64,000 bases of DNA, taken from Cyanophora paradoxa CCMP329. Lineage: Eukaryota; Plantae; Glaucophyta. The first letter of the stretch is position 1; each line of letters begins with the position of its first letter. Under the pieces are notes generated by a model that did no database searches, was not told the DNA's origin, and was given only the letters and a program-made list of their open reading frames with translations. Position numbers and translations under genes: made by a program. This document shows, one piece after another, positions 49,879 through 58,700 of the stretch. The stretch is from positions 292,772 to 356,771 of the forward strand of contig QPMI01000411.1 of NCBI GenBank assembly GCA_004431415.1, in the 5' to 3' direction.

Positions 49879-52357
49879 GGAGGCCGCCTTGGCCGCCTGC
49901 TGCTGCGCCTCCGTCATGATCTGCGCCCCGCTTGAGCGCGAGCGAGCGGCGGGGGCGGGCCGCCCAAGCAAGGGAACGCGGAGCGCGGAGCTCGCCTGCT
50001 GGACGAGGGGGTGGACCTGGATGGGGCACTCCTCCTCCACGGGCGGCGGGGGCGGCGGCGCGACGACGACGGGCGCCTCCCGCACGACCGTCTCCACCGT
50101 CGTCGTCGTCTGGCCCCGCACCAGCGTCTGGCGCCCCGCTTAGCAGGAGCGGCGGCGGCGCGGGGCGGAGAGGGGAGGGGAGGGGGCGGACGCGGAGGTC
50201 GACGAGGAGGGAGGAGAGCTCGGTCATGCGGGCCTCGAGGGCAGCGAGGCGCGACTCGTGCCCCGCGTCGGCGCAGCACGTCGCCTTGACGCCGGCCAGC
50301 GCCGACTCCACGTCCGCCACGTGCCGGTGCACCGACGCCAGCTCCTCCCCCGACGCCGAGACCGTCGCCGTGCTCGTGAACTGCCGCCGCCGCTCTACCC
50401 GCGCGCTCTCGGCCGGGGGAGGGGCGGAGGGCGCGCGGACCTGGCCGCGGAGTGCCGCGATGGACTCGTTCACCTCGGCGAGGCGAGCGTTCACCAGCTC
50501 GGTCACCTGCGCGCTCGCCCGTCACGAGGGCCGCCCGGCGGGCCGAGGGGGCCGCCCTCCCCGGCCGGCGCGCTCGCCTGGTCGGTGGTGAGGCCGCCGG
50601 CGCTGCCTGCCGCCGCCGCCGCCGCCGCCGAGGCCGAGACGGAGGTCAGCTGGTTCTTCACGTCGTTCACGGAGACCTCGAGCTGCGGCGGCGAGGGCGG
50701 CTCGGAGGGCCCCCGGGCTGAGCTCAGAGAGAAGAGAAAGGGCGCACGGAGCGGACGCGGGGGCCAAGGGCGTCGTCGCCCTCGCCGGGGGCGAGGCGGG
50801 CCTCGAGGCGGGCGGCGAGGTCCTCCAGGGCCGCCAGCCGCCCGTCCTGCTCCACGTCCCGCGCCTCCATCTGAGGCCGCTCGCGTCGGCGGGGGCGGCA
50901 GCGCGGGGCGGAGCTGCCTCTGCCTCGTTCGCGGGGCCGACCTGGGAGAAGCGGGGGTCGGTGGGCTTGGACTCGACGGCGCGGACGCGGCCCTCGAGAG
51001 TCGTCAGGTCCGTGCGCGCCGCCGAGAGGTCCGACTCGGCGGTCGCGAGGCGCGCGGCGAGCGCCGGGTCGACGGCCGCCCGCGGCGAGGCGGACTCGAG
51101 GGCGTCGAGGCGGCCCTCGGCGCCCGTGAGGGCCGCCTCGGCGGCGGCGAGGCGGGCGGCGAGCGGGGCGTAGTCGGTGGCGGGGGCGGCGGGGCGGGCC
51201 TCGAGGCTGGCGAGGCGGCCGTCGAGGCCCGAGAGGCGGGACTCGTGGACGCCGGCGAGCGACTCGGCGGCGGAGAGGCGGCCCTCGATGCGCGCGAGCT
51301 CCGCCACGTCCACGCCGCCGTCGGAGGAGGAGGAGAGGCCGGCGACCGAGGCCTCGAGGCCGGCGGCGCGGCCGGAGAGGCCCGAGACGTCGGCCTGGGC
51401 GCGGGCGACGGCGGCCTGGAGCTCGTTGTAGCGCGCGTCGTGCGCCCCGAGCGAGGCGCGCAGGCCGTCCACCGCCGCCCGCAGCGACGGCACCTCCGAG
51501 CTGCAGCAGTCCGGCGCCGAGACGACCACCGGCTGCGGCGGGGCGATCGGGATGTCCGTCGCGATGATGGGGGCGTCCAGCGGGAGCGCCGCCACGACCG
51601 GCTTGTCCAGCAGGATCGTGCCCGGGCTGTACGTCGTGTACGCCGTCGCGCTCCCGCTCCCGCCGAAGCTCTCCGAGCCGCCGCCGCTGCTCGCCGGGCC
51701 CGATGAGGCGCTGTACTCGGAGACGGAGACGCTGCGCGAGCCGCTGTCGCCCGAGGAGGAGGAGGAGGAGAAGGTCGTGGTCACGCTCGAGGCGCCGCCC
51801 CCGCTCGTGTACATCGCCGCGCTCGCGTAGTACTGCGCGCCGCGGGCCCGCACGGTCGGCCGGGCGATAAGGCGAGGGCCCCGCGGAGGAGGGGCGCGCG
51901 CACGGGCAGGCGCAGGTACTCCTCGTAGTCCAGGTCGTTGGAGCGGTTCACGTCGGCTTGTGTGAAGGCAGAATCGCGCTGCTGCACCGGCACCGTCTCG
52001 TTCTGCGCGGTTGGTTGGCCATTAGGTGAAGCTATCAACCGAAGCCCCGGCGCGGCGGCCGGGAGGCCCGACGGCGCTCTCTAACGACGGAACTGGATAA
52101 AGCTCTAGGCCGCGATTCGCGATCCAGACGCCGCCGCGGACCGGCGGTCCGGGTCGCCCTTGATAACGGCCGCGCACGACGGCGAGGGCTGACGAACCGT
52201 GGCGTAGTAGTATTCACCGCGGTCGATAGACTTACTCCGGTTCGTGTCCACCACGCTAAACAATCCAGCCCGCACCTGCCCCGGCCCCGAACCCATACCC
52301 GCTGAACATTGGGCGCGAACATAGGGCTAGGGGGCGGACCTGCTGGGCGGCGTCCAT
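49527..52357 (-). CDS. EF-hand protein with long coiled coil and Thr/Val/Pro-rich tail
   Basis: Two EF-hand loops (DTNRSKSIDRGEY; DVNRSNDLDYEEY); heptad-like LAARLAAAEAALTGAEGRLDALE repeats; stop at 49527. Start tentative. Confidence 0.65.
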
Positions 52358-52746
52358 GGCTGCTTGCGAGGACTTGGAAGCGCCTCGAACCCGTCGCGAA
52401 CGCAGTGAAGACGCGAGCCGCGTCTGGAATCTGTACCCCCTAACCCCGGCCGGGGGGGGGGGGGGTCAAAGATCATCAAACCATTCTTCACTCGAGAGAG
52501 GGTGCGAGTCGATCCGCGTGAAGGTGAGAGGACGCTTCGTCTTGAACCGAAATTGATTCTTGAAGTCGCATAAGGAGCAGATCGATCCGCGCAGGGGCGC
52601 AGCGACGCGGGACTCGCGGCGGGAGCTTTCCCAGCCGTTTCATGATCAGCCGTGGCATCTGAGCCGAAATGCCGTAGCGAGTCGTCGAAGGAGCTCGGCA
52701 GGCAACGGCAGACGACGGGAGCCGATCGGCTGCACTGGAATCTCCC

Positions 52747-55700
52747 ATGCTCAATGCCGAGGGCGCATGCGAGGAGCTCGAGTCAGCTCGCAAGGTCCAG
52801 CAGCAGGCGCATCAGCACGGCGGGTTTGGACCGCGCATAATCCAATTGCTGTGGCTGATGTTCGTTCCTGCTCTCCCGGTGCGCCCGCGGCCGAGTGCTC
52901 ACCGTTGCGATTACGAGGTTGCGATTACGATTGGGGTACCGGTGCTAGCGGTCGATGTTGCGATTACGATGTTTGCGATTACGACCGGTGCTTGCGATTT
53001 CAAGTTTCAGCTACGATGTTTGCGATTACGATTTCAGCTACGATATCGACGTTCGACGGTTGCGATTACGAGGTTGCGATTACGATTGGGGTACCGGTGC
53101 TAGCGGTCGATGTTGCGATTACGATGTTTGCGATTACGACCGGTGCTTGCGATTTCAAGTTTCAGCTACGATGTTTGCGATTACGATTTCAGCTACGATA
53201 TCGACGTTCGACGGTTGCGATTACGAGGTTGCGATTACGATTGGGGTACCGGTGCTTGCGGTGGGGGATACGCTGCATCGCCAGTTTGCTGCTGTGCCGG
53301 CATCGTCCGCCGCATAGCCCGTACGCGTGTGCGCTGTCGTCCATCCCCCCCACACCCCGGGTATGCACGCTGCTGGTTGACGGCACGCGCAGCGCCCGGC
53401 CGGTCTGCCCGGTCTGTGATTCGGCGCGTTTCTGAGTCGACGCACCCAATGTCCCGGAACGACGAATCTCGGCCCGATTCGACGCCGATGTGCGCTTACT
53501 CGCCCCTGGTGGCCTCGTTCGCTGACCGCCGCCCCGCCCGCCCCCGCGTTCGCAGCCGCCCGGACTGCCCAGCGGTCCTAAAGGACGTCCAGATCGTGTG
53601 GCAAGGTTGCGAAACACCGGAGGCCACGTACCCCCTCTCCGACTCCGCGACCCCCTCCTCCCCTCCCCAAAGCCTTACCCTGTACCCCCTCCTTCGCCCA
53701 GTTGAAGAGGAGGCGAGGGCGGAGGCTGCGCGGCGCGCGGAGGAGCGGGAGGAGGAGCGGAGGGCGGCGGAGGCCGCGGGCGTGTCGAAGGCGGAGCTGA
53801 AGAGGCGGGAGGCGGCGAGAGCAAAGGCCGAGGCGGCCGAGGCGGCGAAGCCGCGCCTGGCGACGCTCGTGTACGTCCTCCGGCGCTGCTGCCTCGAGGG
53901 CGAGACGAGGGACCGGGTCTGGCGGGAGATCGTGGCGGCCGCCATCGTCTACAACGCCTGCATCGGCCTCATCAAGCTCCACCGCTGGGTGCGTGCCGGC
54001 CTCTGCCCGCTCAGGCGCGTTGCTGACGCCCGGCGCGCGCGCGCTTCGCCTCCCCTGGCCCCCAGATCGTCGACGACCTGAGCCAGAATGCAGCGCGCAA
54101 CCTGCTGCATCGTGCCTTCGCCAACGTGCACGTCTACACCGGCGACCGCGCGGCTCCTCGGCGCGCTGCCTCGGAGGGGGCGTCCGAGGCGTGGGGGGGG
54201 CTGGCCGAGGAGGTGACGGAGGAGGGCCACTACGACCTCGTCATCGCGGGGCGGGGGGCGATGCTCGCCGAGCTGGGCCCCGAGGAGAGGCGCTGCTTCA
54301 ACGGGGCGCTCGGCCACACGCGGGAGGCGGCGGCGGACGACGCGCTGCGGGCGGCGAGGGACCAGATCGCGCGGGGCAAGCCGCTCAAGAAACTCAAGTG
54401 CGTGTCGTTGGAGGGGTGGGGGTGGGTGGGGGGGGTGGGGGGGGGGGGGGGGGGGGGGGGGCCTCCTCGCTCGCCCCGAAAACCGATCCCGCCTTCCCCC
54501 CTCGTGCAGGGATCGCAGCCTGCGGCGGCGGCAGTGCTCGGCCGTCGTCAAGTCGGGCGACTACAACAAGGGTCTCGGGGCCCACTGGGGCTTCCTCAAG
54601 ATGCTCCCCACGCACGACGGGCCCCTCCCGTCCGCGATCGAGCACGACGCGCGGCTCGTCCTGAAGCCCAGCGGGAGCGTGTGGTGCGTGTCAACTTCCC
54701 TCTCCTTCCCAACCCCTCCTTTCGCTTCGCTCTCGTTGAGCGTGGGGTGCGTCGCAGGTTCTGCATCCCCGTCGAAATGGAGAAGGCGCGCGCGGCCCGC
54801 ACGACGAGGGTCATGGCGCGGACCTTGCCGGCGGAGGGCGACTGCGAGGCGAAGACGACGGAGGCCCGCACCGTGCCGGCGACCTCTCGCCGGCGGAGCC
54901 CCAGGGACCCGGCGGGCGACGGGGGCGACCGCGAGTCCGAGCTGGCCCGCGAGGCCTGGCTGGAGCTCCGCGGCAAGTCCCTCGTCGCCGTCGACCCGGG
55001 CTCCCGCAAGCTCATCTCCTGCTTCTGCCCGGACGGGCGGGCCTTCGAGGTGCGGTGGTCTCGCCTTCTCCCCCTTTGTCGTCCATCCGACGACGCCCCT
55101 CCCCCGCGCAGTTCGGTGCTGGTCTGTCTCACGCACGGGAGCCCGCACTGAGGCGGGCGGCGGCGCTCATGGCCAAGTCGGAGCTGAAGCCGGGCCCCGC
55201 TGCGTGCGCCCCCCCTCCCTCCTTCCTCCCTCCCTCCCTCCCTCCCTCTCTCTCCCTCAGTCGGTTTGCCAGGGGCGGGTCAGCCCCGCTCAGCGCTCGC
55301 ACGCGCCGCCGGCTGCGGAAGAAGGTGCTCCGGATGATCGAGCACGAGCGCAACGTGGGGCTGGACGCCCTGCGCGTCATCGCGCGGTGCGCCCCCCTGA
55401 GTGCTGCAGCCTCTTCGTGGCCTCTGCGGTTGACACCCCCCTCAGGTTCCTCGTGGAGAACTTCGACTACATCATCATCCCGGAGTTCCGCACGAGCGAG
55501 ATGGTGCGCTAGCGTGATTCGACGTCGTCCGCTCTTCCTCTGTACGAACCCCCGGGGGCAGGTCCGGCGCAAGGGGCGGATTCTCGGGCCCGCCGCTGCG
55601 CGCCAGCTGCTCTACTGCCGCCACTATGAGTGAGGGCGGGCTGATTCTGGTTCTGGTTCCGGGGTGGGGCTCACTGCTCGCCCGTCGCCCCTCCCCCCGC

Positions 55701-58700
55701 CCGCAGGTTCCGCTGCATCCTGCAGCAGGCCGCCCTGCACCGCCCGGAGTGCACGGTGCTCCTCGTCTCCGAGCACTACACCTCCAAGACCTGCGGGGCG
55801 TGCGGGTGTCTCCACACGGAGCTCGGCGCGGACGAGACGTTCCGCTGCCCGAGCTGCCCGGCGGAGATGGACCGGGACCTCCAGGCCGCCCGGTGAGTGA
55901 ATTGACTAGTCGTAGTCAATTCACCTCTATATCGTAATCGCAACCTCCGCTATAGCTGAACCAGTAGAATCGTAATCGCAACCTCCGCTCCTTAAATCGT
56001 AATCGCAACCTCCTTAAATCGCGATCGTAATCGCAACCTCCGCTAGAATCGTAATCGCAACCTCCGCTAGAATCGTAATCGCAACCTCCGCTAGAATCGT
56101 AATCGCAGCCTCCGCTATAGCTGAACCAGTAGAATCGTAATCGCTACCTCCGCTCCTTAAATCGTAATCGCAACCTCCTTAAATCGCGATCGTAATCGCA
56201 ACCTCCGCTAGAATCGTAATCGCAACCTCCGCTAGAATCGTAATCGCAGCCTCCGCTAGAATCGTAATCGCAGCCTCCGCTATAGCTGAACCAGTAGAAT
56301 CGTAATCGCAACCTCCGCTCCTTAAATCGTATACGTCATCGCAACCCTCCGCTATAGCTGAACTAGTATATCTAGAATCGTAATCGCAACCCTCCGCTCG
56401 AGGTCACCCCAGTAAACATTAAGTTTATATCCTAATCTTAACCCATTGAAATCTAATCGCGATCGATGTCTCGTAATCGCAACCTGACCTTACAAATGAA
56501 TTCGCACACACCGATCGAGAGACAAATGGCTAGGGATATGACTGCAGTGTCCATCTGTGTCAAGTCGAGAGATGAGCCTACGGGAACAAGTCGCAACCTG
56601 ACCGTCTGTAATCGCAGGAACATCCTCCTGCGGTTCCTCTCGGGCGTGGACGCGGGGCTCCGCCTCAAGCCCCTTCTGCTGGCCGGCTCCGGCCCGCTGC
56701 GGGCCGCCCCCGGGGCGGCCCCGGCCCCCCAAGCTGCGGCGCAGGCCGCGTCGAGCGCTGCTCGTGGGCAGCTCGCTACGCCGGCCTCGTCGTCGTAGTT
56801 TAGGCAGGATAGGGGGACCGCGTACCCCCCTTCAGCGGGCCCTGCCTGCGTTGCCCGCAGGCTTGTCGCCCCCGTAGGTGGCACGGACGCAGCTAAGCTC
56901 CTGCGTAGTCCGCAGCTAGCGTGCCCGTGTTATCAATGCGCTCACCGTTGCCCATCATCTACCCTCAGGCCGTATGGCTGAGCTGTTATCCGGGCGCGCT
57001 GGAAACGCCTCAAGACCGCCGTAACCTTTTCATGTATTCGGGGACTCTTACAGGTTAGCCGGCCAACCGGGCCCCACCGATCCCCGCCCGCCGACCCTCC
57101 CGATCGGCCCCCCCGCAGGCCTACAGGTCTCGTTCTCGCTTGTTTGCTGGGGCAGCCTCGTCTACGGCTGGGACATGTCGTGCAGGTGCTTTGCAGTTCA
57201 TGTTTCTCGCCTCGAGGGCGCATAGATCGGGAGCGCCCGCGGCGCTCACCGGTGCCGGGGGCGCCGCGCAGGCCGCGGAGCGTGGCGGTGACGGTGGGCG
57301 TGCCGCTGCTGGTCTACTGCGGCTGGTACGGGGCCGGCTGCTGCCTCATGGCCTACGCCCTCCCCCTTCGGTTCCTGGAGCTGCCGTTTGTCCTGCCCGC
57401 CATCGGTGAGAGAGCCTCCTCCTGATCTCTAGATCTGGCCCTCCACCGGGTGCGCCCCGGCCCGCTGAGCTCTGGCCCTTGGCGCGTGCGCGCGCGCGCA
57501 GTGGCCGCCCTCTACGTCCCCTCCTGCGCCTCCTCCGTCCTCGTATGGAACCGCCTCCTGCGGCGGCGCCTGCACCCGCGCCCCGCCCTCGACTTCGAGC
57601 CCGTCGAGCTCGAGCTCGAGCCCGCCATGGCCAGCGGCGCCGGCGGCACGCTTGTCTCGGACCTCGACTCGCCCCGCCCCGCCCAGCCCTGCCTCAACGC
57701 CAAGACGGCGGCCCGCGACGCGCCGGCCAACGCCCAGCCCGGCGCCCCGCTGCTGGCCGGCGCCGTCGACTTCTGGCGGGCGCACTACAGCCAGCGCCCG
57801 CCGGCGCGCCCCTCGGCGGAGCTGCTGCTGCTGCGCGACGGCGAGGGGAGCCCGGGGGGCGGGGCGGGCCCGGGCCGCGGCGGGCGAGCGATCTGAGCGT
57901 GGCGGGCAGCGACGAGCGGGAGCGGCCGGCGCCGAGGAGGAAGCACCTGGCGCTGGCGTGGGGCGCGGGGGCGGAGAGGGATGCGCTGGGCCCGGCCTCG
58001 GACGACACTCTGGACGGGAGCCTCGCCCCGCCCCCCTCGGAGGAGGAGGCGGGTCCCGGGAAGGAGGAGGACGGGCCGCGCGCGCAGGCGGCGCAGGCGG
58101 GGGCCGAGGCGGGGCCCCTGACGGCGACCTCGCCCTCCTCGCGCATGGCGATCTCCCTCGCGCTCTCGGCGTCGGAGGCGGGCACGCCCCGGGCGCGCCT
58201 GCTGCGGGGCCAGGCGCTGCGCGCGGGGCGCCGCCGCTTCCTCGACGACGCCCCCGAGATGGCCTGGCGCCTTCTCAAGTTCATGGGCGGCCTCACCGTA
58301 CAGATCTACCCGGTAGCCCCTCCCTGCCCCCCCCACCCCCCAACAGGAGCCTTCTCCTTACGTCTCGCTTCGCAGATGTGGGGCTACGTCTTCCTCTTCT
58401 CGCTCTTCGAGGACAGCGGCTCCGCACAGGTGCCCCGCATTCTTCCGCCTACCCCCCCCTCCTCCCCCCCCCTCCGTGCGCCCCGTGAGACCGCACCTGT
58501 ACCCACCCGTCCGGCAGGTCCTCATCAGCCTCGCCTTCTCCGTCCTCTCATTCGCCACCTGCTTCGCCATCCTCCGCGTGCGCCGTACCCCCCTCCTCTT
58601 TCCTTCCCTGTACTGTGCTCATCTCCCTACCCCCCGCAGGCCTACAGGGGCTTCCTGGGGGACCTCCTCCCGGACTACGGTGGCCCCGTGCGCCCCGCGC

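Follow-up and report, generated by a model that had tools for sequence, protein, structure and literature searches.

Why should a compact Fanzor2 element in the Cyanophora paradoxa genome carry two clusters of the same short repeat in opposite orientations, one at its left boundary and the other inside an intron of its nuclease gene? We address this question for an element that lies in a 64-kb stretch of this genome (the window, to which all coordinates refer). Conserved mirrored arrays, one of them in a spliced intron of the nuclease gene, would offer a concrete cis-element for asking how eukaryotic Fanzor2 elements that lack a transposase move and are regulated, with a paralogue fused to AP2-like domains as a candidate binder. 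We tentatively favour a reading in which the arrays are cis-acting clusters of one short candidate protein-binding site and the AP2-like domains encoded by the same family are the likeliest binder. It is the binding of the motif, the identity of the binder and the effect of binding that we infer.

Two mutually inverted arrays share a 12-nt core

Both arrays are built on the 12-mer TTGCGATTACGA, which is made of two hexamers, TTGCGA and TTACGA (two TTRCGA halves). When up to one mismatch is allowed it is found 28 times in the window, versus 0.07 occurrences expected by chance: 12 exact copies lie on the + strand at 52905-53240 and 16 copies on the - strand at 55932-56482 (12 exact and 4 with one mismatch), and the same search found 0 copies in the rest of the window. 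The left array (52904-53262, + strand, GC 0.50) holds the 12 exact cores and two variant units; Tandem Repeats Finder (TRF), which we used to define repeat units, describes it as 2.3 copies of a 155-bp higher-order unit at 99% identity. The right array consists of a young part (55931-56331, - strand), with 2.4 copies of a 165-bp higher-order unit at 98% identity, a 24-nt sub-repeat and a core that reads TCGTAATCGCAA on the + strand, and of older, decayed units (56332-56489, - strand, GC 0.44), in which the cores at 56378 and 56471 are exact and the rest have 2-3 mismatches; the degenerate units extend to 56482. The GC content of both arrays is 0.49-0.50, versus 0.72 across the window. The motif search and TRF thus confirm the first-pass annotation of this DNA, which had described two mutually inverted tandem arrays with units of 155 and 165 bp and about 16 units on the right.

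Aligning the left unit with the reverse complement of the right unit gave a score of 41, within the range of controls with shuffled linkers (23.7 +/- 8.4, max 54). Since the score does not rise above that of shuffled linkers, the 12-mer is the only shared part, extended in many units by a leading GG and a trailing T or TT; homology of the higher-order units beyond the core was rejected, and the earlier claim that the linkers differ and the core alone is common is borne out. We also rejected the idea that the left array is an inverted partial second copy of the element: no reverse-complement match to the last exon or the tail lies to its left, and the linkers differ. No further copies of the element were found in the window. 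What has to be explained is an exact core in 24 units across two arrays that have unrelated linkers, are mutually inverted and stand 2.7 kb apart. An exact core, unrelated linkers, mirrored orientation and restriction to the element are together the usual signature of clustered binding sites, and we take such sites as the best explanation. That the arrays are found only at the Fanzor element in 64 kb supports their belonging to it.

Outside Cyanophora, a double-core pattern had 0 matches in viral contigs and matched 38 loci in metagenomes. The latter are imperfect (TTRCGA)n hexamer microsatellites with two exact 12-mers; they lie in varied GC contexts (0.36-0.67), showed no Fanzor by tblastn and were rejected as relatives. 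The existence of such unrelated microsatellites means that exact core matches outside Cyanophora are no proof of relatedness.

The right array lies in a spliced intron of the nuclease gene

The gene, Cyanophora paradoxa tig00020556_g11064 (public model tig00020556_g11064.t1 in EukProt, P0001), fits an in-frame model of 11 exons and 1953 nt at 53449-56798 on the + strand, and together with the arrays it fills the 4.0-kb element. Exons 1-10 lie at 53449-53605, 53702-53988, 54066-54397, 54510-54683, 54758-55049, 55112-55203, 55261-55386, 55446-55503, 55562-55629 and 55707-55892; the last exon, which runs from NIL to the stop codon, lies outside the arrays at 56618-56798. Domain searches were run exon by exon, and the public model was used for whole-protein steps. 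PF07282, the Cas12f1-like TNB zinc-ribbon domain, matched exon 10 at 2.7e-13 and the public model at 3.5e-13. The exon translations contain VAVDPG, IIIPEF, CxxC...CxxC and DRD, and the predicted protein has the C-terminal RuvC order D...E...(zinc ribbon)...RD and the TNB/OrfB zinc ribbon of a Fanzor2/TnpB-like nuclease. Assignment to Fanzor2 rather than Fanzor1 is provisional. Word searches matched only the gene's own public model, and no relatives of that model were found in viral contigs.

Intron 10 (55893-56617, + strand, GT..AG, phase 2) is 725 nt long, or 9.7 times the mean of the nine remaining introns (57-112 nt), and interrupts the Arg codon of AAR/NIL directly after the RuvC-III DRD; the first-pass annotation was right to describe it as about ten times the local norm and as splitting this motif. 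It is nearly all array or array-derived: a 38-nt head with a palindrome, the young array, the decayed units and a last unit variant (56606-56617, - strand, placed from the exon model and the unit layout) that supplies the intron acceptor (CAG/G). The acceptor, CTGTAATCGCAG, lies within array-derived sequence and agrees with the array unit at 9/12 positions, as had been claimed when it was called a repeat variant.

All our read evidence comes from contigs; these can reveal that a sequence is present, but neither that it is absent nor where transcripts start nor at what level they occur. Two runs from different studies were taken as RNA; this identity is the tool's guess, and many GT..AG joints occur there that are absent from the DNA runs. 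In both RNA runs contigs join 55889 to 56615 and skip 725 nt (depth 35 and 31), while the contigs of both DNA runs contain 0 such joints. Because the joint of exon 10 to the last exon is present in RNA but not in DNA contigs, intron 10 is spliced; six small introns are also spliced in the same RNA runs. At least one copy therefore splices out the array-bearing intron, although that copy may be another locus, since the RNA contigs over the joint show paralogue-type differences.

Retention of intron 10 leads to an immediate TGA, which is the exact end point of the public model. A perfect 12-bp palindrome with a 4-nt loop (55897-55924, + strand; -19.1 kcal/mol, z = -3.9) overlaps donor positions +3 to +6; it is unique in the window and common to about three copies (contig 55728-55935 of run X8, 3x depth). 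At the other end a predicted 10-bp hairpin (56610-56635) spans the acceptor, with a weak z of -2.05. Judging from these predicted folds, the two splice-site hairpins may influence retention of the intron, which would end the protein right after RuvC-III.

Three minor features of the gene were noted. At 55891 the window has C and every contig of both DNA runs, as well as the RNA contigs, has A (CGG to AGG, both Arg), which points to an error in the assembly or to a difference between strains or copies. Intron 3 contains a 49-nt G run (54413-54461) and intron 6 a (CCCT)12 run (55209-55258), and contigs break at both.

The arrays relative to the ends of the element

The element is flanked by a 12-nt direct repeat, GCTCACCGTTGC, a candidate target-site duplication whose left copy (52897-52908) exactly matches the right copy (56940-56951); in 2000 shuffles the longest shared word had a mean of 6.3 nt and a maximum of 13. 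The left repeat copy closes with GTTGC, and these 5 nt also open the first array unit. The overlap may be due to chance (about 1 in 1000), or a duplication of 7 nt may be extended by 5 nt of microhomology. In the latter case the left end would have been set within a longer array, and truncation of this copy could be all that places the left array at the boundary, its terminal position possibly being an accident.

No terminal inverted repeat above the level of shuffles was found at the true ends (GATTACGA... and ...TATCAATGC), and no inverted repeat of >=9 nt with spacing <=40 nt, as in a 3' hairpin, was found in 56860-56950. The right array is set back 322-1008 nt from the right end, its last exact core by 457 nt and its acceptor variant by 322 nt. 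No transposase or recombinase fits in the element, and a low-sensitivity search found none among ten long open reading frames (ORFs) of the window.

On the left, the stretch 53263-53636 (+ strand), which includes the predicted first exon (53449-53605), is unique to this copy: a contig over 53227-53666 has single-copy depth (105), and paralogue similarity begins only at 53637, where a paralogue-type contig starts, leaving the 375 nt from there to the left array single-copy. On the right, the non-coding tail (56799-56939, + strand) is present in about 30 genome copies (depth 3462 vs ~105).

Other copies of the element

Our knowledge of other copies comes from contig depth and joints and from proteins; the single-copy depth of run X1 is ~105. 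DNA depth climbs toward the right end, from 2-4x in the gene body to ~10x in the last exon and ~30x in the tail. This rise implies that most of the copies that spread are without both arrays, and that spread of this kind does not require the arrays.

A dispersed minisatellite unrelated to Fanzor loci was one of the two outcomes that the first-pass annotation had named as refuting its reading. Array 31-mers reach only about 2-12x single-copy depth, comparable to the gene (2-4x), and the motif is thus no dispersed high-copy satellite. After allowing for internal repetition, the depth of the right array fits about three loci, and the intron start is likewise common to about three copies, with a 3x-depth contig covering exon 10, the palindrome and the first array unit. 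Another DNA contig leads from array units across 11 other nucleotides to the last units and on to the same acceptor, which shows that at least one other copy has an intron array, differently arranged. Words of the left array occur ~6-11 times, versus 2.3 at this locus; the left array is therefore truly longer or is also present elsewhere. The expectation that other copies would carry the arrays thus holds in part: the intron array recurs in at least one of them, and the most numerous copies, the tails, are without both. The presence of decayed units together with young amplification at 98-99% identity indicates long residence of the array in this intron.

Contigs of single-copy depth in runs X1 and X8 join left-array-type sequence (53018/53048) to the tail at 56724/56849, with 12-15 nt between. 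One reading is that they stem from internal deletions that spared the left array and the right end; another is that tails inserted themselves close to arrays.

A full-length paralogue with AP2-like domains

The paralogue tig00021428_g21170.t1 (P0002, 1600 aa) is 96% identical to tig00020556_g11064.t1 over exons 2-10 and diverges from it at the same, array-bearing intron. Its N-terminal 627 residues contain a PHD finger (6.4e-6) and two homologous domains (40% identity, 1e-15), the second of which matches the AP2 domains of WRI1 (1.4e-4) and ERF096 (6e-4) in the PDB. Neither these 627 residues nor the C-terminal extension of the paralogue has a match in the window. An RNA contig extends 325 nt upstream of exon 2 into sequence missing from the window, which fits a real spliced N-terminal extension in the paralogue.

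At the C-terminal side, residues 1165-1600 contain a flavin-reductase domain (PF01613, 1e-21) and begin at the same array intron. The gene predictor has probably joined a neighbouring gene to the paralogue here.

What the arrays may do

In the binding-site reading, the arrays would belong to a small subfamily of Cyanophora Fanzor2 elements, and TTGCGATTACGA, with its two TTRCGA half-sites, would be the site. One cluster would stand at or upstream of the left boundary of the gene and the other, inverted, inside the old RuvC-III intron, presumably one of the few spots in so compact an element that tolerate non-coding DNA. It is reasonable to suppose, as the first-pass annotation did, that the right array is intronic because the right end must encode the omegaRNA. 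The likeliest binder would be the tandem AP2-like domains that the family makes as part of the 96%-identical full-length paralogue, since two half-sites would fit two domains. Protein bound at both flanks of the nuclease gene could then control expression or mark the element as donor DNA. One may go further and imagine, though we hold this improbable, that an AP2-bearing Fanzor2 docks on the arrays while its guide RNA leads the nuclease to an empty target, so that the donor is tethered to the break and copied from the right end. Engineered nuclease-donor tethering would then have a counterpart in nature, and Fanzor insertions that are right-anchored and left-ragged, with duplications of variable length, might find an explanation.

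Several observations weigh against the binding-site reading. The AP2-like stretches of the paralogue gave no Pfam match even at E <= 10, a single-sequence AlphaFold model of its residues 190-445 was unusable (mean pLDDT 44), and the Fanzor2 copy in the window is itself without the AP2 part. The spacing of the cores is irregular (left 14/39/15/19/28/40; right 38/27/28/24/24/24) and helical phasing is absent. Differences between copies within each young array strike the core as often as the linkers, leaving recent constraint invisible. Finally, the commonest copies are truncated tails without either array, and their abundance argues against a classic role in pairing transposon ends.

Some of these same features would be expected if the arrays were functionless minisatellites, a strong competing reading that is only a little less probable. 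An inverted-repeat seed or an old inverted duplication would in that case have been amplified independently upstream of the gene and in the intron. The 98-99% identity of the higher-order units speaks for recent amplification, unit-copy differences fall freely on the core, and the arrays are low in GC and look prone to slippage; the core is, moreover, a hexamer dimer that expands readily, with the 38 unrelated (TTRCGA)n loci in metagenomes as examples. However, the same exact 12-mer stands inverted 2.7 kb apart, among unrelated linkers and nowhere else in 64 kb, for which at least a conserved inverted seed is needed, and an array has been kept in the same intron through decay and re-amplification. 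If further Fanzor families in this genome turned out to have arrays with co-varying motifs, a new piece of Fanzor element anatomy would be defined; otherwise this would be an ordinary though curious minisatellite pair.

An unlikely alternative is that the inverted arrays act by pairing as nucleic acids, either in a single-stranded DNA intermediate, as amplified versions of Helitron2-like asymmetric terminal inverted repeats, or in a long pre-mRNA, and so loop out the gene body or join its two sides. The predicted array-array duplex is strong (-322 kcal/mol vs -165 +/- 11 for shuffles; -79 vs -12 for one unit pair), and a core unit begins 0-5 nt from the left boundary. The insertion signature is also Helitron2-like, with a duplication of variable length (12 nt here) and an overabundant right end (PMC3627910). 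On the other hand, unequal core spacings permit only short helices of ~12-18 bp with loops between, and the right end, whose nearest inverted core is 457 nt rather than 20-30 nt away, showed no 3' hairpin. No RNA contig covers 53288-53434, and no transcript with both arrays was seen here, which is weak evidence.

We give little credence to the possibility that the arrays control transcription through host factors, the left one as a promoter or enhancer of repeated units and the intronic one either as an enhancer that works in both orientations or as an internal promoter serving the last exon and the guide RNA. Mouse L1 elements, whose 5' monomers form a promoter built of repeated units, offer a precedent. 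The left array ends 186 nt ahead of the predicted ATG, copy-specific RNA contigs begin only downstream of it (contigs cannot show starts), and the ragged left ends of the family would do little harm to a promoter made of repeats; yet the tail shows no increase in its RNA-to-DNA depth ratio and expression specific to this copy is low. Just as improbable are subterminal binding sites for an unlinked transposase that pairs the ends in cut-and-paste or IS607-like movement: the inverted orientation, the left array at the boundary, the left-array-to-tail contigs if they are internal-deletion derivatives, and the known residence of Fanzors inside non-autonomous hAT, EnSpm and Helitron elements (PMC10530073) would suit it, but the lack of a detectable terminal inverted repeat, a 12-nt duplication unlike that of hAT (8), CACTA (3) or IS607 (none), a right array deep inside the element and missing from the putative deletion derivatives, the prevalence of array-less tails, and the failure to find a transposase in the element or, at low sensitivity, in the ten long ORFs all speak against it.

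Comparison with known systems

Subterminal repeat clusters are already known in hAT, CACTA and IS607 elements (PMC6188088). In hAT (Ac/Ds, Hermes) and CACTA (En/Spm) transposons, many motifs of 6-12 bp are irregularly spaced up to hundreds of bp from the ends, have opposite orientations at the two ends and are bound by the transposase (PMC6188088). The present element resembles these in its clustered short motif, irregular spacing and opposite orientation at the two sides. Unlike them, it has a 12-nt duplication and no terminal inverted repeats, its right array sits 322-1008 nt from the end within a cargo-gene intron, and we could find no transposase. Neither the CACTA termini and 3-bp duplication of CACTA/EnSpm elements nor the short terminal inverted repeats and 8-bp duplication of hAT elements are seen here.

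The IS607 family is where Fanzor2/TnpB of bacteria and viruses resides, and Fanzor2 descended from IS607-type TnpB (PMC3627910). Short repeats near the ends of IS607-family elements nucleate several TnpA dimers, and IS1535 has four 9-bp repeats 20-60 bp from its left end (PMC6188088). Our element shares short repeated motifs near its ends. IS607 elements, by contrast, insert without a target duplication, encode a serine recombinase and have few direct repeats within ~80 bp of the end, whereas here there is a 12-nt duplication, the arrays span 360-550 nt and the serine recombinase TnpA was not found (in the element or, at low sensitivity, in the ten long ORFs of the window).

The arms of Drosophila foldback (FB) elements are mutually inverted tandem arrays with higher-order periodicity that can bracket coding DNA, and in these respects the two sides of the present element look alike to them. 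FB arrays, however, reach both termini and are homologous over their full length, while here the 12-mer is the only common part, the left array is at the boundary, and the right array is internal and intronic and ends 322-457 nt short. The proposal of the first-pass annotation that these are subterminal protein-binding arrays, as in IS607, CACTA or foldback elements, is partly supported: the arrays are restricted to the element in 64 kb, inverted and built on a short common core, and the intron array is present in at least one other copy; the end features of the three model systems did not turn up.

Some Fanzor2 genes reside in transposons with inverted ends and duplications. In gene and insertion pattern the element resembles the Helitron2-type Fanzor elements CRe-1, 2 and 3 of Chlamydomonas, whose Fanzor gene is intron-rich and whose right ends are exact while the left ones are truncated; their duplications vary between 7 and 19 bp, and a short motif at the extreme 5' end is matched by an inverted partner close to the 3' end (PMC3627910). 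Overabundance of right ends is also a property of the Fanzor elements described in 2013 (PMC3627910). Here too the gene is intron-rich, right ends are overabundant and left ends ragged, and the element is flanked by a duplication (12 nt). In Helitron2 the 5' motif is 0-2 bp from the end; the distance of the first core unit from the boundary is 0-5 nt here, according to the end point chosen for the duplication, in a copy that is possibly truncated inside the array. CRe-1, 2 and 3 further differ in being Fanzor1 elements with single-copy motifs, whose 3' partner stands 20-30 bp from the end before a hairpin; the present element has arrays, a distance of 457 nt and no hairpin in 56860-56950.

AP2 domains serve as DNA-binding modules of HNH homing endonucleases (PMC10448857, citing Magnani 2004). 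The paralogue is similar in joining two AP2-like domains to a mobile-element nuclease, in its case a Fanzor2. In AP2-HNH endonucleases the AP2 domain helps to recognise the cleavage target; the nuclease here is RNA-guided, and the proposed AP2 sites would lie inside its own element. Judged by titles and abstracts, we found no paper on mirrored arrays at a Fanzor gene with one array intronic, or on a Fanzor joined to AP2, and no paper that pairs Fanzor with Cyanophora; papers that mention Fanzor along with AP2 or subterminal features seemed unrelated on the same basis.

A nested insertion and the flanks of the element

A 101-nt insertion that is not array sequence is nested in intron 10 (56490-56590), between two copies of a 13-nt direct repeat, TCGCAACCTGACC (56477-56489 and 56591-56603). 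The empty site is represented by DNA contigs of two runs, which pass from 56489 directly into the sequence after the second TCGCAACCTGACC copy. Related copies extend past both ends of the inserted piece, which is part of a genomic repeat at ~100x copies; the bin 56522-56668 has a DNA depth of 11587 (vs ~105 for single copy) and RNA depths of 6878 and 7752, and the inserted repeat reaches a depth of about 7000 in RNA contigs, versus about 50 for the Fanzor exons. Rfam (E <= 1, 52300-57300) and a tRNA scan gave no match, and this high-copy piece of the intron fits no known RNA family.

Just left of the element, pieces of an ORF on the minus strand (51781-52296) contain EF-hand-like loops (DTNRSKSIDRGE, DVNRSNDLDYEE). 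To its right, the sequence ends in a pyrimidine-rich stretch followed by CAG and resembles an intron acceptor on the + strand.

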